Shown here piece after piece: positions 48,587 to 64,000 of a stretch of 64,000 nt of DNA (position 1 is the stretch's first letter; the number at the start of each line of letters is the position of its first letter). The position numbers and the translations under genes are program-made. The stretch is from positions 1 to 64,000 of the forward strand of contig RHPI01000140.1 of the NCBI GenBank assembly GCA_009103225.1, given 5' to 3'. The notes beneath the pieces were generated by a model that saw only the letters and a list, made by a program, of their open reading frames with translations, made no database searches and was not told where the DNA came from. The DNA comes from Chlorokybus atmophyticus. Lineage: Eukaryota > Plantae > Mesostigma and Chlorokybus algae.

Positions 48587-50964
48587 ATGGCGGCGGCGGC
48601 GGCAATGGCGGCGGCGGCGAGCTGCGCGCGACTGTCGTCGGCATCGCTGTCAGCTCAGAGGGCCAGGAGCAGCAAACTCGCGTATCACGCAAGGGGTTTG
48701 CCTGCGTTGAGGCCCAGAAAGTCGCCTGGCAATGGAGGTGTACGACTCCTCGGCAGCCGCCTGCAGCGCAAGCCCGTTGCCATGGTTGCAGTGCCCCCAG
48801 CCGTGCCATTGCACGAGGAGTTTGAAGACCGACGCAATTCCATGTTTGACGCACAAAACCCCGCGCAGGTAGCTGAGAATTGTGCATGGTGCGATGAGTT
48901 TGCTTTCCTTGGCTGTCGTTGTCGCGCTGCAGACAGTGCTCATTACGAGCTTCTGCACAAGCCGTCGTGCAGATGTTCAACGTCACAGCGTCAGAGGTCA
49001 GAGGACTGGACGTTTGGTGGTGTAACTTGTTGAGTTGAGATAGTCGTCTTGTTACAGCACTTGTCGTTCGTACAAAACGATTGGCACTCCTCGTCCTGTT
49101 CGGTAAATGCCGCAGTCCGCGCTGCAGGCAGTTCTTCAAACTATTTTAGAGTTGCTCCTTATGTCTGTGCATTCTGTTTGTCTTCAAGTCTTACATAGTA
49201 TGCCTCAGTCGTGCTGAGACAAGTTTCTCAGGAGCCCGAAGGTTTCGACCCTGGCGCTGCTCCTCCCTTCGGCCTCACAGACTTGCGCAAAGCGATTCCC
49301 GAAGCATGCTGGCAGAAGGACACAACAAAATCCATGCTGCATATGTTCCGCGACGTTGCCATTGTAGGTGCACTAGCTGCTGCAGCTGCCTTCATCAACA
49401 GCTGGTGGGTGTGGCCCGCGTACTGGATTGCGCAAGGCACCATGTTCTGGGCGCTGTTTGTCGTAGGACACGACTGGTAAGTGTATGATGCCGTGCCAAT
49501 CATGGGCGCTTGTCCCATAAGGATCTTGCAAGCTGCGCTCTTGTGCCGCTGGTAGTGTGGCAATTGCTGAGAGCTTTGTTCTGGTTGCAGTGGCCATGGC
49601 AGCTTCTCTAACAATAAGGCATTGAACAACTTCATCGGGCACTTGACACACTCGTCCATCCTTGTACCATTCCATGGCTGGTAAGTACTGCATAAGTGCC
49701 TCCATAGAATTTCTCAACGCCTTACCTCAACACGCCTCACCTCAACACGCCTCACCTCAACAAGTATTGCATGCACTGACGAATCCATGCACAGGCGCAT
49801 CAGCCATCGCACACACCATGCCAACCATGGCCACGTGGAGAACGACGAGTCGTGGACCCCGGTCAGTCACGGCTGTGCTGCGGACTTGGTAGCATTGTAG
49901 TGCAACTGGCTGGTGCTCATGTTGGGCTCTTGTGACAGATTGCCAAGTCACAGTATCAGAATATGGATGCGTGGGCCAAGGCTGGTCGATTGGCGCTCCC
50001 CTGGTCATTGTTTGTATATCCTTTCTACCTGGTATGTGCAAGCCTGTTGTGCAACAGCAACACCACACATCGCATTGTATCGCAAGGCTTTAGTGTCACT
50101 GACTGATGTGTGTTGTTGCACAGTTTGTTGGCTCCGTTGAGCAGGCAGGCTCGCATTTTGACCCCAACTACAAGCTGTTTGCCAAGAACGAGCGCAATGA
50201 CATTATCGAGTCCAGGAACTGGGTGATTGGTATGGGAGTGATCCTGGCTGCTCTTGCCTTCCTGGAGGGACCTGCCATGCTGTTCAAGACATACATTGTA
50301 CCCTACTGGGTGAGTTGTTGTGTTGCAACGGGGGCTGCAAGCCGTCACATGTTGTGGGCTAGACTGTTTGTGGCAAACATGTCGTAGTAACACAGCTTTA
50401 CTTGACAGAGGTCTGTATTGCTGACGCTGTGTGCGCAGATCAATGTCATGTGGCTTGATGCCGTTACCTACTTGCATCACCATGGACCTGAGGATAACAC
50501 GCCTAGAGTCCCGTGGTACCGTGGTGAGGAGTGGAGCTATCTGCGCGGTGGGCTTTCGACCATTGACCGCGACTATGGCCTCTTCAACAACATCCACCAT
50601 GACATTGGCACGCATGTGGTTCATCACATCTTCCCGCAGATCCCCCATTACAACTTGCTGGACGCGGTAAGCTCGCATGCACAATGCCTGCCATTGCCAC
50701 CTGATAGAAGCAGTTTTTCGCTGCAATTCAAGGAAGTGGCCATGTTTGACTGTGGTTGTTGGTGTGCAGACCAAGGGCGCCAAGACAGTCATGGGCGAGT
50801 ATTACCGCGAGCCAAAGCCATCGCCCGGGCCGCTGCCATTGCACTTGCTCCAGCCTCTCGTTAGGAGCTTCTCCGAGGATCATTATGTTGATGACCACGG
50901 AGATGTGGTGTACTACAAGAAGGACCCCAACTTCAACATCATGAAGCGTGCGATAGTTGACTAA
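48587..50964 (+). CDS. FAD7: Plastid omega-3 fatty acid desaturase (FAD7/FAD8-like), ~461 aa, 8 exons
   Basis: Exons 48587-48868, 49232-49476, 49591-49680, 49795-49861, 49939-50031, 50124-50309, 50439-50666, 50770-50964. All introns GT-AG and in frame. His boxes HDCGH, HRTHH, HVVHH; Ala/Ser/Arg-rich transit-peptide-like N-terminus. Confidence 0.95.
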
Positions 50965-53414: not shown

Positions 53415-55336
53415 TCAAACCTCCACAGCTGTTACCAGTGTGTCCATGCCACACCTACAATAGCAAACAGACGTGCAGTTAGCTTCCTTCACATGTGCAT
53501 CACTTGAGATGCTTGCGTCACCATGCAGCATGACGCTTGCCAGGTGGCAGCAATCATGTACACACAAAGGAGAATGCCCAGGGCTTACATGTCGATGCCG
53601 CGGCAAACTTTGAAGAAACCCTGCTCAGCCCAGTTCTTGCCCCAGGAGTTCTTGATAATCCAGTATGGCTTCTTTGTGAAGCGAGCAGGCGCATAGCCCT
53701 CCGTGCCATAACCAACGAGCAGGACTCCATGGTTGAGATGGGACTTGGCGCAGATGAGTGGGCAATGCACACCACCAATGTATGTCTGTTCCACGACACG
53801 CATAAGAAATCAACGTCACAAGGGACAGCTGCAGCAAATGTAGTGTGTTGTGCTGCACAGCGAGAACTCACCTGCAACCAACTTGCGTTGATGCCAATAG
53901 AAAGCGGACCTCGCTTGACCAGATTTGCGGCAATCTGGCCCTCATCTCGCGGGATGAATGTGAAGTTTTTGATGGTTGCCGCGGCCTTCATGCCATCAGA
54001 TCTGCAGCGACCATCTTTGCCTGCACCGCACACCGCCAAGGTTGACATTCGTGGCCTCATGTTTGGGCATGCACACAACCGAGTGCCACATCCTTTGGGC
54101 AGTCCACATGTACGCATGTGTCCTCTCACCCGTATATGGGTAGTCTGCCTCCGACACAATGCCATGCTCCAGGATGTACTCAAACGCATTGCTGGCCGCA
54201 AGCAACAAGCCACGCCAGTACGCTCGATGAGAACACACATAACCATCACAACAGTGCGCATCAGGTGAACATGACAAAGGGAGAGGCACCTTGGAAGGCC
54301 GCCAGCGCAGCCCGAGTCACAGACTTCCTTCTCATCGGGATCGCAGTCGTGGTCGCAGTCCACAAGCTGCTGCTCAGACAGCGACACCATATTGCCGGTC
54401 TTGAGGAAGTGCGCTCCCTCGACTACGCCCGTCGCGGAGAATGCCCAGCACGACCCGCACATGGCCTGGTTCTTCACCTCGCCAACGGCCCCACGCTCAC
54501 GCCAGTCAAAGGTTTCGGGTAGGCCCTGTGTGGGAAGCAGCGGCGCCATGCGCTCTTCATGCGAAGGGAAGTCGCTCGCTGAAAACGCCATGCCCAGATG
54601 CTGAGAAGCAAACTCCTCCTCTGTCAGGTCCATGAACGGGCTCACGCCGTGCACAGCTGAAGGGTCCAGCAGCTGCGTACACATGTACATGTCAGCGCCA
54701 CTGCGTGGTGGGTGTCTACACATGGCAACGAACATCCAAACCACGCAGCATCATGGTCACATCTGTTTTGCTAATATGTCAACACTCCACCAAAGCTGAG
54801 ACACAGACATGAATACCCTTGTAGAAAATGGAATACGGCACACCTGCACAAACATGCACAAGTGCACAATGCTCAAGCACGCACGGGGCACATGGTGGCT
54901 GGCTGCACGGTGCAGGCAGGCACTACATGCACATGGACAACACTAACAACTAACAAGATAGCTGTTGCTGCTATGTCACCAAATCCAATCACATAGACGG
55001 AAAAGCGTGCCAAAAGGCAATTAATCACGCGTGCGCATGTGCTTATTTGTGGGGCACCTGACGCTCATGGGCCTTGGCGATGTTCTCAGCGAAAATGGCG
55101 AGGCGTCGGACGTACTCCACGCCCTCGTGCTTGCGGCCGTGTACCTCCATGAATGTGGCAAACTGCGCCTCCATGTTCCATGTTGCGCCGCCCAGAATGC
55201 TGCCCCCAACTCTGACCACGCCGTCCACGCCATCCGACACGGCGCCACCGTCCTCCAGAGGCCGAGCGGCTGCCGCAACGGCCGCCGCCAGGGCAAGGAA
55301 CAGCCCGGCGGCCCAAACACCACCACCCGCAGCCAT
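53415..55336 (-). CDS. RD19: Papain-family (C1A) cysteine protease, RD19-like, ~369 aa, 6 exons
   Basis: Exons 55058-55336, 54290-54672, 54130-54191, 53872-54020, 53589-53785, 53415-53454. Signal peptide; ERFNAQ-type prodomain ([20 protein letters not shown]); [18 protein letters not shown]; RD19-type [19 protein letters not shown]. Confidence 0.95.
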
Positions 55337-55835: not shown

Positions 55836-58769
55836 ATGGACGAGGATGGCGTGCTGGCGGAGAGCGCCGCCAGAGGGCTGCACATCGACGTGCCGGCGGC
55901 GGCGGCGGAGTCAGATCCGCCCGACGACGAGCACGACGAGCTGTCGCCTGCAAGCCCTGGTGTCCCTGAGGTGAGAAAGCCATCCTTCCGCTCATGCTAG
56001 AAGCAGGGTGTACGGGGAGACGCGTGCCTTGCGGCCGATCTGAACATGGGTTCGGATGTAACCACCAATCCAACAAGTGTGAGTGCGTATCCGTTCCCGT
56101 GAGCGTGTTCAAGTGCGACCAAGAGACCAAAAGAGACATCGTGAGGGAAATGTGTCTTGGCTTTGTTTGCGCCTGACCGTGTGCATCAGAGCGTGGGGTT
56201 GTGTTCTCTCTGTCTCTCCCTCCCTGCTTGCTTTATCTCTCGTGCATGAGGAAGGCAGCAGGCATCAGAAAGTATGTGTGCGTGCGCAGTCAGATGCTTT
56301 GCTGGCAGAGGCGGTCAGAGCCCCTGAGGCTATGATGATTTCCGCACAGGACGAACTCACCGACAAAGGGCTCGCCACCACAGCCGCACAGGTGAGGAGA
56401 TAACCGGATCATGCTCGGTGTAAAACAAACAAGCATTCGCACAAAGATGCATATACACGCACGCGCGCATGCACACGCATACCACAACAACATCAACACA
56501 AACAGAAGCACGCACATGCGCTTGCACGCACGCACGCACGCACATGCTCGCGCACGCTCATGGTACACCTACGAACCCAGGGTCTCCCCGAGGATGTCGA
56601 GTCGGCCGTCCGCAGCGCCTTCACGCGGTTTGACGTCAGCGGTGAGGGTTGGATCGCGGGCTACGAGGCGGGCGCGGCGCTGGCTGCAGCGGGCATCGCC
56701 GACTGCCCGCCCGTCGAGGAGTTGGGCGCCCTCATCGCTGCCGTCGCCCCCGACAACGTGTAAGAGACGGTGATGTACTGTGGGTGTTTGATACCACTCG
56801 CAAGGAATCGATACATATTCCGTTTGCATGCAGGGATCGGTTGAAGTACCCGCAGTTTGTTCAGCTGGTGCAGTACTTGATGTACCGCACATCCAATGCA
56901 CAGCAACCCTCCCCAAGGTTAGGTCCCCACGTGTGTTGGATCTCTTCATTGTTAATCAGCACTCCACTCCTGTTTGAGATATACTGATTCTTACAATGGG
57001 TGTGTTCTTATGCTGGGTGTCCCAACAGTGAGGTAGCTGCCAGGCCTGATGAGCGGCAGCATTCGCCTGGGTACAGCAGCAGCAGCAGCAGCATTATTGG
57101 CGCGGGCATTGCTGCGAAGGTGCGCGTGGCTCGTCTTCAGAAGATCCCTGCTTTCCCGGAGTTCAACCCGGTGGTGTTGGAACATCTGAGGGTGAGAGAG
57201 ACGGTTGCATGATGGCTCTGCTCTATCACCAGCATGCACAGTGCATGAGATGCAAGGGTGTGCACGCGCGCACGCTTGCTTACCTGCGTGAGCGTGCACG
57301 TCGATATTCATGCTTGTGTGTGCCTGCGTGTGAATGTTGCGCATGCTTGTGTGCCCAATCCTGTGTTCGTGCGTGTCTCTGCTGACATGCCTGTGACTGC
57401 AGCACTTGGATGAGCACCGGCACTCCTGCGAGCGGGATGGCAGGTACATGGAGGCACGCACGGCAGCCAAGCGCATGCACGACTTGAAGGCGAGTACAGC
57501 TACCGGAAGGCGCATATTCACTATACACATCATGAGCGATGGGTGCTAATCAGCAGCTCTCACCTGTGGCAGATGCATGAGGAGGAGCGCGTGCGGGCGG
57601 AGATGCGCGCCAGGCATGAGCGCGAGGTGTTGGAGGTGCAGAACGCCCACCGCAACGAACAGATGGACCACCAAAAGGTTGAGATAACGCATGCGTTTTT
57701 GTCGAGGTGACTCTCCCAATTGTAGACCGTGAGAGATTGATTGGAGGTGTGTGTTGCAGATGTGGGATGCGAAGGAGATGGAGTTTCAAGAGAGCGTCGC
57801 TCGCGCACTTGAAAGCATGCAGGTGAGAATGAAACATGCATATACACACATACATGTACATGCCCACACACGTGCGTGCGTACGCACGCATGTGCGCACA
57901 TCCACGACGAACACCCCACAGGTGCACACAGGGAAACAGACAGACATGCACGCATACATGCACATACAGACGGACGCATGCGCGCGTGCACAGATACGAG
58001 CGTTCACGCACGCACGCATATGTACACAAACATGCCCCCCCCCTTGCAGGCTCGTCACGAGTCCAAGGTCCGTTCCTTCTACGACGCCTCCCTCTCCCGT
58101 TCCCCGACCCGCGCCCAGTGTTCCTCCGACCTCCTCAACGCCCGCGCCATCCAGTCCCACCTCGCCAAGCAGTCCATGTACCTGCGCGCCCAGCACGTCA
58201 AGGCCATGGCGGACAGGCGGGAGAGGGAGGAGCTGCACGACAACAGGGAGAAGCACGAGGCGGAGACCACGAGGAGGGTGGAGAGGATGAGGGAGAGGCA
58301 AGCGGTCGAGCAGCAGGCGCTGTTGCAGAGAGGTGCGAGGGGGAGGGAGGAGATGCGGCGCATGCGCTCTGCCCACGAAGCCAGACAGATGCAGAGGTTC
58401 AAGAATCTGGTGGCGGAGCTCGCGACGCTGCATTGCATGGAGGCGGCGCAGCTGGGGTTCTTTCTCGAGAAACAGACCGTCGCGGGGAAGAGGCCGCTGC
58501 CGGACCTGGTGGACGACCAGGAGAAGGTCAAGACGGAACTCAGGAAACCGGGACTGGATAGGTTCTCGCAGTCGTTCAACATGGTGAGGGTGTTCATGTA
58601 CCCGTCAATCAGTATGCGTGCGTGCGTGTTGTGTCGTGCTTGCATTGGATTGACTGCACTTGAACTACGCTTATACGCGCGCCACTTCTTTCTTCAGGAC
58701 ACAGCCACGGACGTGTCTCCGATTCCCTCGCCAAATCACGCGCCAAAGGCCCACAGTTTTCAACTATAG
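55836..58769 (+). CDS. EF-hand-like plus coiled-coil protein of unknown function, ~470 aa, 10 exons
   Basis: Exons 55836-55970, 56350-56391, 56581-56759, 56834-56881, 57044-57191, 57403-57489, 57573-57677, 57760-57822, 58050-58583, 58698-58769 join in frame (one GC donor at 57490). EF-hand-like AFTRFDVSGEGWI; E/R/Q-rich helical C-terminal half. N-terminal exons are least certain. Confidence 0.8.
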
Positions 58770-59050: not shown

Positions 59051-62000
59051 CTACAGGCTGAAGCGACGGGGCTTCCTGGCTTTGGTGACGCTGATGCTGT
59101 TGACTGCAGGCTTGACCTGCATCCAACCGCACAGATCAAGAACACTCATCCATGTAGTTGCAACACGTGTCATAGCTGACGAACTCTAGAACACAAACAC
59201 ATGCGAAATGTCCTCTCACCCTCTCCTGCAGCGACATGCGGCGCGGCCGGGCAGTTTGCAATGCGAACTCGAACACTCCCGCTGCGCTTGTGGACGCATC
59301 ACTGTCACCCACACTCTGTGGCAGTGTGTACACGTATCAGTGATCGATTACCTACCAGGGACATACACGAAGAGGGTGAGTGAAAACCAGCACGCACCTG
59401 ATGCATTGGTGGAGACGCTATAGGCGGTGACATGGCGCGCGAATCGATGCTGTCTCTGGCTGCGAGCCACTCGTCAATGTGGACGTCGCGGACCACGCCG
59501 TTGGTGTCGAGGGACCAGCGCACCATGGGCCTGTGCACACCCGACGCCGAGTAGAGCTCGTCGTCATCATCTTCGTATCCGTCCTCCTCCCACAAATCAT
59601 CCGGCAACAACTGTGTGCATTGCTGTTCGTAGTCGAGTTTGAACAACTTGTTTCAAACAGGGCAAACAGGACAACGGACAGAGATACACACACGCACCCC
59701 CACCCACCCACCCACCTTCATCAGCGCCTGCACGACTTGTGACATGTTGGGTCTCTTCTCCGGGTCCGCACGTACACACTCCCTGACCACCTCCATCACT
59801 CCCCTCACCTCCTCCTCCTTCGGCCTCTCCGGTATCCCTGGGTCCAGCGTGCCCACCGCCACCGGCTCCCTCACGAACCTCTCCTCCACAAGCTCTTCCA
59901 GGGACTGAGTCTGTCTGATCCCAGGGTGGAAGAGACCCACCACGAGTTGGAGTAACACTACGCCGAAGCTGTAGACGTCGCTGGCGGTGGTGGCGTGGCC
60001 GGATGCGCGGTAGGAAGGGCAGATGTAACCCTCCGTGCCGAGGATGCGGCCCCCCGTGGAGGTGGAGGACGGGGAGAGGGTGGAGGAGTCGTCTCCTGTA
60101 AGCTTGGCGAAGCCGAAGTCGGAGATCTTGGGGGTCATGGTCTCGTCAAGCAGGATGTTGCTAGGCTGAACAGTGGAAGACGGATAAGGAGTTTGAAGTC
60201 AAGCGACAGGTGGCATGCGTGTGCCATGTGTGTATGTGTTTGTGCGCACGCGTGCTGGGATGTGTTTTTTGTATGTTTGCAATGCTTGCCTTGATGTCGC
60301 GGTGGAGTACGGGTGGGCACATCCCGTGGTGCAGATACGCAAGGCCACTTGCCGCTCCGAACGCAATCTTCAATCTCTGCACGCAGGGGACAGCGTTTGT
60401 TGCCTCGTGCTCGAGCGCATACACGTGCGTGTGCACCGACGCACAGACAGTAGCATCTGCAGAAATGCATACGTGCATGCGCACACTTGCAACATTGACG
60501 GTGTCGCACCTCTTCCCATGGCAGGCCTGGGATCTGTCGCAAGTGGTGCGAAAGGCTGCCACTAGACGCCAGCTCCAGCACCAGCAGGATGCGATTGCCA
60601 TCAACACAGAACCTGCACCGCAACACATGTACGCAAGTGTCAACCCACTTGTCCTCCCGAATGCTGGAAACACTCCCACACGCGCGTACCCGAGCATGTT
60701 GACCAGGTTAGGGTGGCGTATGCGGCTGAGTATCTTCAATTCCGACACAAACTCTTGCAACCCCACTTGCACCACATCCCCACTATCTCTCGTCCCGCGC
60801 GCGAACCCACTTTTCCCTCCTTCCAGTCGCTTCACTGCTGCCGTGAAGCCGTTGCCGAAGGTGGCCCTGTACACCTGCGCAAGGAGAAGGGTCTCAGTGC
60901 GTGTGTGATGTCATGTGTGTTTGTGTTGCGTTGGGGTGAAACGTGAGACGTAAAACGGTGTTTGGTACGTACGCCGCCAAAGCCGCCGTGGCCGAGAAGG
61001 CGGTCGGCGGAGAAGGTGTCGGTGGCGCGCATCAGGTCCGCGTAAGTGTAGTTGCATTGCTGCCAGTGAGTAGATACCTCTGTTACAATGAATGCACAAC
61101 AACAACGGCAACCAGCACAACAACCATTGTCTGCGTGCGTGTGCGTGTGCGTGTGCGTGTGCGCGCGTGCGTGTGTCTGTGCGTGCACTGCGCACCAGGT
61201 CCCTGGCGAGGACATCAATGACGTGGTCCGGCACGAGTGGCTCCAGCCCCTTGACAACGTCATCCATATCCGGCCTCACCCTCGGGTCCTCCTGCAAGCA
61301 CTCTGCCGCCAGCATCGCCACCCGTCTCACCGCATCCGCTGGCGGGGGCGGTATGCGCGTGTCCACAAAGGTGTTATTGCTACCAGCAATGGTGTCGAGT
61401 CTCTCGAGCACCCATTCGCGTAAGCGGTGCTCGGCGGCCGCGCGGCTCATGTCGGGAGAGGCACGTCCCGCCATGAGTTCAAGAATTACGACACCGAAGC
61501 TGTACACGTCTGATGCGAAGGAGATGTGGCCCGTCGACTCGTACTCGGGGGCGAGGTAACCAAGCGTGCCGAGCTGAAACGTGTCACAAGGTTGGATGCG
61601 TTGTTTATTGCGTTGTACGTTGTGTGAGATGCAAAAGTTGCGGATTGCCATGTTGAGGGCCAAACGCACGCACGCACACCTGCACCCACGCACTCACACG
61701 CGCACTCTCCCACCCATGAGCGCGCGCACGCACGCGCGCATGCACATGCGCACGCAACCACGCACAGCACGCACTGTGCACGTACCACGCGCGTTGTCTT
61801 ATCAACGGCGTTGGAGTCGTACAACTTCGCCAACCCAAAGTCCGCCAACTGTCAACAAGATGCATTTGATCGCGTGTGCCAAGATCTCGGTTTACAGCAA
61901 CGCCAGCAAAACACCCACAGCACACACTGCAAAGCCTCCCCACCTTAGCCTGGAAGTTGCTGCTGAGCCTGCCATACGACAACACACAAAACTCACAGAC

Positions 62001-63574
62001 GCAGTAAGAATCCACTCACCCTCAACCACAAACATAGCACCAAACCAACATCAGAGGCATCTGAGGGGCATCAGCACCCAGCAAATCATCACTCACAGTA
62101 TGTTGCTCGGTTTGACGTCCCTGTGCACCACCCCCGGCCTCGCTTCCCTATGCAGATACCTCAACCCTCTCGCCGCCCCGACCGCCACTCTGATCCTCTT
62201 CTCCCAACTCATACTCTCCCCGCTCTCGTACAACACGCGCGCCAGACACCCGCCGGGACACAACTCCAGCACGAGCAACACACGCCCGGGTTTATCGGCA
62301 CACATGCCGTGGAGAGAGATGAGGTTGGAGTGGCGGAGACGGGTGAGCACACGCAACTCAGTAAGGAACTCAGACAATGCTGTGTCAGTGTTGGGGTTAG
62401 TATCATTTGTCTCGAGGCGTTTGACTGCGGCGGTGCTGCCGTCCGGGAAGGTAGCTGTGTACACGGCGCCAAAGTGGCCTCTCCCTATCAGATTGTGTGC
62501 GCTGAAGTTGTTTGTGGCGGATTGGAGTTGGGCGTAGGTGTACATCACTTGGCCCTCCTGGCGGTAGAGGTAGCTGGGGCGGGGTGCGGTGATGTCGGTG
62601 GTGTGGAGGTGGGAAGCGTCCTGAGTGGAGGAGGAGCGACGGCGGCGGGCGGGACCCAACATGCCGCGGGAGAAGTCGTTGTGTTGTGGGTTGGGGCTGG
62701 GGGGGGTGTCGTCATCGTTGGCAACATGACTCTGTTTGTTGCCTCCGGCCATGCGTTGGTAACCGCCACGCCTCGCCATGTAGAAAATCAAAGCACCTGT
62801 GTGCGTGTGTGCATTAATGCATGCGTGTGCACGTGTGTGAGTGTGCGTGTACACTCACCGACGAGCACCAAGGTAAGCACTCCCCCGGCAGTCGTCCCAA
62901 CAATGACTCCAACATGGGAGCCACTGTCGTCTTTTCCATCCGCCGGGCACGGGCTGCCGAGGCCCGTGACTGTGGTGCCCCCGGTGAGCACCAACCCGGC
63001 GGGCACGGGACCACACAGCCCCGAGTTCTTGGCCACCGAACTGCAGCCGGACACACACACACATGCGTGGGCACAGGCACATGCCAACACACACGTGCAC
63101 GAGATTGCACGCAGGCACGTACGCACGTATGCTCGCTCGCACCACCGTATGCACGCACGTGCACATGCGCTCAATACCAACATGAACTGTGCAACAACAA
63201 CCGACTCTCGGACTTACATCACCGTGAGGTTCTTCAGCCTCGCAATGGACTCCGGTATCTCCCCTTCCAGCCTGTTCCCCTCTAATTCCATCCTCCTCAA
63301 TCCCTCGCACCCCTCCCCGAGTCCGGGCGGGATGGTTCCTGTTAACACATTATCGCCGAGGTCGAGGACTTCCAGTCTGGCGAGGGATGCCAGCTCCGGG
63401 GGGATGGGACCGGAGAAGGCGTTGTCGGAGAGGAGGAGGGAGAGGAGGACAGGGAGGTGGGAGAGGGAAGGGGGGAGGGGACCGGACGGGAAGTTGTCGG
63501 ACAGGTTGCTGGAGGGGGGAGGGGGATGAGGGGCAGGGCGCTTGTTAGCATGCGCCCACACACACACACGCGCG

Positions 63575-63643
<69 letters not shown>

Positions 63644-64000
63644 GGGCACGCACATACACACGCATATGCAAAGTGCGCATCATGCTGCAAACACGAATCC
63701 ATTGTTGCCGCTTGCATCTCTTGTAGCTGCGTGAGATTGCCAATCACCGGGTCGAGTGTCCCTCTCAGCCCCGCTCCCTCCATCACCCTATCACCGCCAC
63801 ACCCCACCACCATCACTCACCATCCACCGTACTACTCCAAAACAGCACCACTCACAGCCTGTTGACGCGGCCGTCGGCGTCGCACCCGACCCCGCTCCAC
63901 GCGGAACAGGCGTCGACGGCGCTGCTGTCGCGCCAGGTACCGAGCGCGGCAGTGAGGAGGTCGGAGGAGGACCACGCATCGCGCAGAGAACGGAGCGCTG
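59051..64000 (-). CDS. LRR receptor-like kinase (RLK/Pelle) with two tandem kinase domains; 5' end outside the window; >=1058 aa
   Basis: Exons 63856-64000, 63716-63787, 63218-63508, 62859-63040, 62097-62796, 61944-61968, 61786-61848, 61196-61573, 60973-61059, 60690-60874, 60510-60612, 60290-60376, 59716-60165, 59398-59646, 59220-59315, 59051-59116. LRRNT (W..C..WSGVGC), ~5 LRRs, NSGLCG cap, TM, kinase 1 and kinase 2. The join between kinases depends on acceptor choice. Confidence 0.85.
63579..63638. repeat. (CA)30 microsatellite in an RLK intron
   Basis: Seen directly; CA/GT- and CACG-rich tracts mark most introns in this window. Confidence 0.95.

Follow-up and report, generated by a model that had tools for sequence, protein, structure and literature searches.

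A Chlorokybus atmophyticus gene predicted to encode a leucine-rich repeat receptor with two RLK/Pelle kinase domains

We analyzed a 64,000-nucleotide stretch of the genome of Chlorokybus atmophyticus (GenBank assembly GCA_009103225.1, contig RHPI01000140.1, positions 1 to 64,000 of the forward strand; hereafter the window), an organism that a preliminary description, made from the DNA letters alone, had rightly taken for an alga. By combining three-frame translation with the mapping of splice motifs, we traced a gene of 16 exons on the minus strand from 63998 to 59054, with consistent phases and one reading path to a stop codon at 59054 (Table 1). In order, the exons encode a leucine-rich repeat (LRR) N-terminal cap, five plant-type LRRs, one membrane helix, a first kinase domain (K1), a second kinase domain (K2) and a tail; the N-terminus and signal peptide of the receptor lie beyond position 64000 of the window, and no further kinase gene was found within its 64 kb. 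The GC content at third codon positions (GC3) is 0.68-0.87 in every exon, and the GC content of the introns is 0.47-0.59. The splicing of all of these exons into one mRNA is predicted; our best reading of the locus, to which we attach a probability of roughly 60%, is that of one fused gene that places the LRRs, the helix, K1 and K2 in a single polypeptide.

The first part of this predicted protein is that of a receptor. We searched the exons of our spliced model one at a time, so that the Pfam comparison proposed in the preliminary description was made with single exons; it yielded both LRR and Pkinase matches, the former being LRRNT_2 on 63998-63858 (E = 4e-5) and LRR_1/LRR_8 on 63507-63220. 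Five 24-residue plant-type LRRs were counted by eye between the N-cap and the Cys-containing cap, and the best PDB sequence matches to exon 3 come from plant LRR receptor kinases, namely, from ectodomains such as those of GSO1, FLS2 and PEPR1. The membrane helix comprises HVGVIVGTTAGGVLTLVLV (19 residues), a Gly codon (GGT) that is split by the intron, and ALIFYM (6 residues), after which ARRGG follows; its two parts have mean Kyte-Doolittle hydropathies of 1.89 and 2.25, and its continuity depends on the predicted splicing of the 62-nt intron 4. Several features of an LRR receptor-like kinase (LRR-RLK) are found here, namely, an N-terminal LRR cap, plant-specific LRRs, and a single predicted helix that separates the LRRs from the kinase; Pfam, translation and hydropathy agree in this with the preliminary description, which had listed an LRRNT domain, about five LRRs and one transmembrane helix. 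The juxtamembrane region also contains RRRRSSS, a possible basophilic-kinase site.

Both kinase domains can be read from their motifs upon translation: IGRGHFGAV, AAVKRL, EFLTEL, HRDVKPSN, DFG, APE and RPDM in K1 (exons 5-8), and LGHGGFGGV, AAVKRL, EFVSEL, HRDIKPSN, DFG and RPNM in K2 (exons 9-13). The catalytic set of K1 is intact, as was to be expected from the motifs first reported for it (IGRGHFG, AVKRL, HRDVKPSN, DFG and APE), and its DFG occupies a 63-nt exon of its own, preceded by a 25-nt mini-exon. The second kinase had likewise been described as complete; LGHGGFG, AVKRL, HRDIKPSN and DFG are indeed present, and K2 keeps its G-loop, the VAVK lysine, the αC Glu, HRD, DFG and the subdomain XI Arg, but it reads CPS where K1 has APE, which is the only alteration to its catalytic set. 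The Pfam Pkinase profile matched K1 at 62794-62099 (profile positions 3-129, 2.9e-24) and at 61573-61196 (profile positions 159-259), and K2 at 60165-59716 (profile positions 126-259, 1.2e-15). The best PDB matches to the K1 N-lobe are CARK1-like 5xd6, BAK1, LYK3, FERONIA and Pto, and then IRAK1/4; those to the K1 C-lobe are BIK1 and RIPK, and those to the K2 C-lobe are RIPK, BIK1, SymRK and IRAK4. Because these best matches are to structures of plant receptor-like kinases (RLKs), plant receptor-like cytoplasmic kinases (RLCKs) and animal IRAKs, we classify both K1 and K2, by sequence, as RLK/Pelle (IRAK-type) RD kinases. We also considered a division of labor between a receptor-type K1 and an RLCK-type K2; this idea was rejected, as both C-lobes match BIK1 and RIPK best.

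Another key observation concerns the relationship between the two domains. K1 and K2 are 40-57% identical, exon by exon (about 45% overall), and they have in common the unusual strings YTYAxL, TAAVKRLE and LLVLEL; the number of intron positions that they share is zero. By these comparisons, K1 and K2 are old paralogues and not a recent tandem copy. The activation loop of K2 is Ser/Thr-rich and six residues longer than that of K1, and the linker between the two domains is about 15 residues.

The protein would end in a tail of 123-135 residues, its length being set by the acceptor that is used for its first exon: 59610 is the more likely start, and a weaker alternative acceptor at 59646 adds 12 residues. 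An acidic tail of about 135 residues had been proposed previously; the length falls within our range, but the acidity is confined to the first ~20 residues, and the net charge over 124 residues is about -6. The tail terminates in two basic RRxS motifs, RPRRMSL and KPRRFSL (59315-59220 and 59116-59054), which are possible basophilic-kinase sites. This region of ~125 residues looks disordered; it has no Pfam match, and the ESM Atlas returned only sub-threshold matches of 0.86.

Table 1. Exons of the two-kinase receptor gene, with the introns of particular interest (window coordinates; the public model is JGI Chlat1 model Chrsp387S05503).
Feature	Positions	Strand	Content
Exon 1 (partial)	63856-63998	-	LRR N-terminal cap, ...CSAWSGVGCDADGRVNRL; Pfam LRRNT_2; donor GTGAGT at 63855
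Exon 2	63716-63787	-	LRR 1 (VMEGAGLRGTLDPVIGNLTQLQE); placed by frame and phase arithmetic
Intron 2	starts 63715	-	GC-AG, donor GCAAGC; contains (CA)n microsatellite, tandem repeat 63557-63661
Exon 3	63218-63508	-	LRRs 2-5, plant-specific 24-residue type; Pfam LRR_1, LRR_8
Exon 4	62859-63040	-	C-terminal LRR cap (NSGLCGPVP...SPCP) and first 19 residues of helix; donor GTGAGT at 62858
Exon 5	62097-62796	-	Remainder of helix (ALIFYM), RR stop-transfer, juxtamembrane region of ~80 aa, K1 N-lobe to HRDVKPSNI
Exon 6	61944-61968	-	25-nt mini-exon LSSNFQAK, restores reading frame; also used by public model
Exon 7	61786-61848	-	63 nt, K1 DFG exon (LADFGLAKLYDSNAVDKTTRV); absent from public model
Exon 8	61196-61573	-	K1 C-lobe (GYLAPEY ... 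RPDM), ends ...DVLARDL without a stop codon
Intron 8 (K1-K2 joint)	61060-61195	-	Phase 0, 136 nt, donor GTGCGC, acceptor GGCAG, GTGCGT repeat
Exon 9	60973-61059	-	Start of K2 (QCNYTYADLMRATDTFSADRLLGHGGFGG); 57% identity to matching K1 stretch
Exon 10	60690-60874	-	K2 β3 lysine AAVKRL, αC QEFVSELKIL; 45% identity to K1; tblastn cross-match
Exon 11	60510-60612	-	K2 hinge region (FCVDGNRILLVLEL...PWEE); aligned to K1
Exon 12	60290-60376	-	K2 αE to HRDIK; GC donor GCAAGC at 60289; 55% identity to K1
Exon 13	59716-60165	-	K2 C-lobe: DFG, Ser/Thr-rich activation loop, CPS for APE, RPNM
Exon 14	59398-59610	-	Tail with acidic patch (LLPDDLWEEDGYEDDDDE...); GC3 0.73; no Pfam match
Exon 15	59220-59315	-	Tail (...RPRRMSLQER); GC3 0.69
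Exon 16	59054-59116	-	End of tail (...KARKPRRFSL) and stop codon

Two of the introns have GC donors, both of them GCAAGC: one at 63715 (intron 2) and one at 60289 (after exon 12). We take the second of these to be the correct donor because its use makes HRDIK|PSN contiguous, as is HRDVKPSN in K1. Introns 2, 7 and 8 hold CA/GT-type and ACGC/GTGCGT microsatellites (63557-63661, 61664-61774 and 61135-61185), which, when translated, give Cys/Val- or His/Thr-rich pseudo-open reading frames on both strands.

The gene is already represented in public annotation. Our search with exon 5 of 1.84 billion representative proteins returned an 804-residue protein, the exons of which are identical to the window: EukProt EP00898, C. 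atmophyticus, JGI Chlat1 model Chrsp387S05503. This model joins K1 to K2 through the same acceptor at 61060. Because its first residue, Met 62779, falls within the membrane helix, it contains neither LRR nor helix; it omits the exon that holds the DFG of K1 (61848-61786), takes a weak donor at 61222, and retains a piece of intron 11, which inserts 30 residues to which nothing in K1 corresponds. Furthermore, it drops VLHRDIK of K2, and with that the HRD motif, because the real donor at that position is GC (GCAAGC). Chrsp387S05503 is evidently a computational model restricted to GT donors. More generally, genes with GC-AG introns in the Chlorokybus genome will be mis-modeled by gene finders of this GT-only kind.

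Whether the locus is one gene turns on intron 8, which joins ...DVLARDL to QCNYTYADL... in phase 0 (61195-61060), just as had been proposed before our splice mapping bore it out. The single polypeptide that was also proposed is the most economical model, and the public annotation shares its join, but the splicing itself is a prediction. A splice weight matrix derived from the gene's other 14 introns, a small sample that separates donors but not the three candidate acceptors, gave the donor at 61195 a score of 4.87, with the other phase-0 GT sites nearby at -1.29 or lower (61222 scored -1.29). The K1 frame encounters no stop before this donor; were it to remain unspliced, it would continue through 94 more codons of low complexity that overlap exon 9 in another frame. 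Exon 9 itself starts exactly at a pre-kinase motif, YTYAxL..AT..FSA, that also precedes K1. The gap between the kinases is only 136 nt, unlike the gene's 3' flank, which is longer (several hundred bases) and AT-richer and has TGTAA ~170 nt downstream of exon 16. Moreover, all eight exons for K2 and the tail have intact frames, no stops and GC3 values of 0.68-0.86, from which we infer that K2 is under coding constraint, and that fusion is the simplest route to its translation.

Several observations weigh against this interpretation. The acceptors at 61131 (6.45) and 61080 (7.59) score no lower than the productive one at 61060 (5.2), and splicing to either would introduce a stop after 15 codons, ending the protein after K1; for 61131, our translation reproduces the TMVVVLVAVVVVHSL-stop reading that the preliminary description had offered. 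Bearing in mind that Chrsp387S05503 is a computational, GT-only model, its K1-K2 join is weak independent support. Database searches found no transcript-derived protein or contig across the K1-K2 joint: word-index protein searches with the last exon of K1 gave no match, either alone (candidates of 69-220 residues) or inside a stop-free open reading frame (143-455 residues), neither the public model nor two genomic open reading frames matched any contig in exact look-ups, and metagenome contigs did not contain, in exact form, a 27-nt pattern taken from the end of exon 8; blank searches of this transcript type carry no information about expression. The representative-protein library (1.84 billion) yielded neither an ortholog nor a paralog of this layout. 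The next-best matches are land-plant proteins that are about 30-40% identical, and the public 804-residue model, our sole contiguous K1-K2 query, matched only itself above about 40% identity; the library matches were mostly angiosperm multi-kinase proteins, none of them orthologous, which top the list because scores sum over domains. Finally, the presence of CPS in place of APE leaves the activity of K2 uncertain.

The two competing acceptors also underlie an alternative in which alternative 3' splice sites make the locus mainly a one-kinase LRR receptor (...ARDL plus 15 residues), with K2 and its tail expressed separately or as a minor isoform; K2 would then be a cytoplasmic RLCK-like kinase that starts from the Met in ...ADLMRATD..., by virtue of an internal promoter or in a minor isoform. 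There is an in-frame ATG 15 codons ahead of the glycine loop of K2, a TGTAA motif stands at the stop of the 61131 reading, and introns of 62-69 nt are present elsewhere in the same gene. Nevertheless, we judge this alternative to be unlikely: the promoter and 5' untranslated region for K2 would need to fit into either the last exon of K1 or 136 nt, an out-of-frame ATG lies upstream of the K2 ATG, the 136-nt stretch is unlike the gene's real, AT-richer 3' flank, and Chrsp387S05503 likewise fuses both kinases. Furthermore, a stop ahead of spliced introns normally marks an mRNA for nonsense-mediated decay, and the stop in question would be upstream of seven. A variant of the same idea is a bicistronic mRNA, with a first open reading frame (receptor and K1) that is closed through the 61131 acceptor and a second (K2) that is read from the same transcript; about 55 nt lie between that stop and the K2 ATG. 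Bicistronic translation in green algae relies on leaky scanning past a short first open reading frame, whereas here the first would exceed 600 codons with many AUGs, and the out-of-frame AUG would again precede that of K2; we find this proposal hardly credible.

Two further alternatives concern the start of the protein and the status of K2. If the start of the public model were correct, the locus would encode a cytoplasmic tandem kinase from Met 62779, with the LRR exons forming a receptor-like protein gene of their own; in keeping with this, retention of intron 4 would end the LRR reading at a stop inside that intron. That stop (62790-62788), however, lies just 8 nt upstream of the ATG, too close for two genes; intron 4 opens with a strong donor (GTGAGT) and closes with a CAG acceptor, and the helix runs across it (19 + 1 + 6 residues) and into RR, as is usual for receptor kinases. 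In any case, the GC-AG intron 2 would defeat a gene finder that accepts GT donors only, which accounts for the truncated model, and we regard a genuine start at Met 62779 as improbable. We give still less weight to the notion that K2 is a decaying internal duplicate or an exonised remnant from which no working domain is translated. The CPS sequence could be viewed as a sign of such decay, and no ortholog was found that would show conservation, but the eight in-frame, stop-free exons with their high GC3 and the retention of the G-loop, lysine, αC Glu, HRD, DFG and subdomain XI Arg are difficult to reconcile with it, particularly as K2 is old by its divergence from K1 and its intron positions; stops would be expected in so old a copy had it been free of constraint.

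As for the surroundings of the gene, a long Glu/Arg-rich open reading frame that is coiled-coil-like lies in convergent orientation (57876-58769, plus strand) and ends a few hundred bases from the stop codon of the receptor gene. Farther away are an open reading frame with a papain-family (C1) cysteine protease active-site motif (53554-54744, minus strand), probably part of an intron-containing cathepsin-like gene, and another (50418-50864, plus strand) with a motif similar to the third histidine box found in membrane fatty-acid desaturases.

Returning to the reading of a single fused gene, we tentatively favor, as its possible mechanism, a process that we analogize as a built-in relay from K1 to K2, a proposal based upon the domain anatomy and upon known receptor-to-RLCK and RSK-type relays. 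Clustering that is driven by a ligand or a partner would activate the membrane-proximal K1; K1 would phosphorylate K2, in cis or in trans, on its Ser/Thr-rich activation loop; and K2 would signal onward as a built-in downstream kinase, with the tail perhaps contributing regulatory or docking sites through its acidic patch and its terminal RRxS motifs. A role for K2 as a second active kinase would fit better than that of a decayed decoy, because K2 keeps nearly all of its catalytic residues. The complete proposition, namely, that the fused protein is real and also a self-contained receptor module in which the membrane-proximal kinase activates a built-in second kinase, is more doubtful still.

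The interest of the locus derives mainly from its phylogenetic position and from the corrected gene model. If the fused reading is true, then the streptophyte lineage that diverged earliest has tandem RLK/Pelle kinases, in the form of a surface receptor and not of a cytoplasmic resistance protein; if K1 also activates K2 within it, a single algal polypeptide would do the job of the receptor kinase and the separate cytoplasmic kinase of land plants. Tandem kinase proteins (TKPs) form a newly recognised group of resistance proteins in crops, and a clean algal case at the base of the streptophytes would push back the age of the tandem layout. The small ectodomain and the two kinases, which look competent by sequence, would also make a simple system for testing whether the role is one of relay, regulator or decoy. 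As to the gene model, surveys that use Chrsp387S05503 would score the gene as a cytoplasmic tandem kinase that has no DFG in K1 and no HRD in K2. A published count of 11 RLKs for C. atmophyticus, quoted in PMC10868138, may omit this gene, because the public model lacks the LRRs, the helix, the DFG of K1 and the HRD of K2.

The obvious comparison is with the TKPs of cereals, such as barley RPG1 and wheat WTK1/Yr15 (PMC6170490, PMC8761531), which, like the predicted Chlorokybus protein, place two RLK/Pelle-type kinases with a short linker in one polypeptide, and which similarly originate from duplication or fusion of RLK-family kinases. TKPs are defined (Klymiuk et al. 2018, PMC6170490) as cytoplasmic proteins that lack further conserved domains and any membrane anchor or targeting, in a family for which the underlying survey covered land plants only; the predicted Chlorokybus protein adds an LRR ectodomain and an N-terminal helix, and so falls outside that definition. 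Also, most TKPs pair a kinase with a degenerate pseudokinase, whereas both Chlorokybus domains keep an RD catalytic core. The wheat protein WTK7-TM/Pm36 (PMC11006675) is closer in that it is a membrane-associated tandem kinase, both kinases of which were required for activity in that study; however, its single helix is C-terminal and it has no ectodomain, so that it is tail-anchored and not a receptor.

On the receptor side, the N-cap and five LRRs recall the SERK/BAK1-type (LRR-II) kinases, and BAK1 is among the best PDB matches to the K1 N-lobe; this likeness is one of LRR count and PDB match. SERKs have one kinase, and the locus lacks their Ser-Pro-rich hinge, the segment ahead of its helix being GSPCPADGKDDSGS. 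A figure legend of Ngou et al. (PMC10834447) gives SERKs as n = 0 for green algae. There is also a functional analogy with animal kinases in which one domain controls another within the same chain: RSK and MSK have two active kinases in relay, and JAK has a pseudokinase-kinase pair. The analogy extends to function only, as these families are unrelated to that of the Chlorokybus protein and have no ectodomain, and no common origin is implied.

The preliminary description held that single-pass LRR receptors normally carry one kinase, which is true, although the two-kinase layout has precedents in land plants. LRR-RLK catalogues (PMC7555646, PMC4776374) list such members in Medicago (Medtr5g087360 and Medtr1g040615, 2 of 329) and in soybean (Glyma.03G026800, 07G047200 and 13G228300; n = 3). 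Our own matches include a predicted Sphagnum balticum protein (P0167) with malectin-like and LRR regions, one transmembrane helix and two full kinases, and a predicted FERONIA-like Impatiens protein (P0168) with a malectin-like region, a transmembrane helix and two kinases. These land-plant receptors have the same order as the locus (ectodomain, one helix, two full kinases), but they are only about 28-30% identical to Chrsp387S05503 and thus not orthologues, and they have other types of ectodomain or far longer LRR arrays; they are themselves predictions, and some may be merged tandem genes. In the literature that we searched, we found neither a functional study of any two-kinase receptor kinase nor a report of a receptor with two kinases in algae. 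The layout is, therefore, not unprecedented: the Chlorokybus gene joins a known, uncharacterised kind of receptor.

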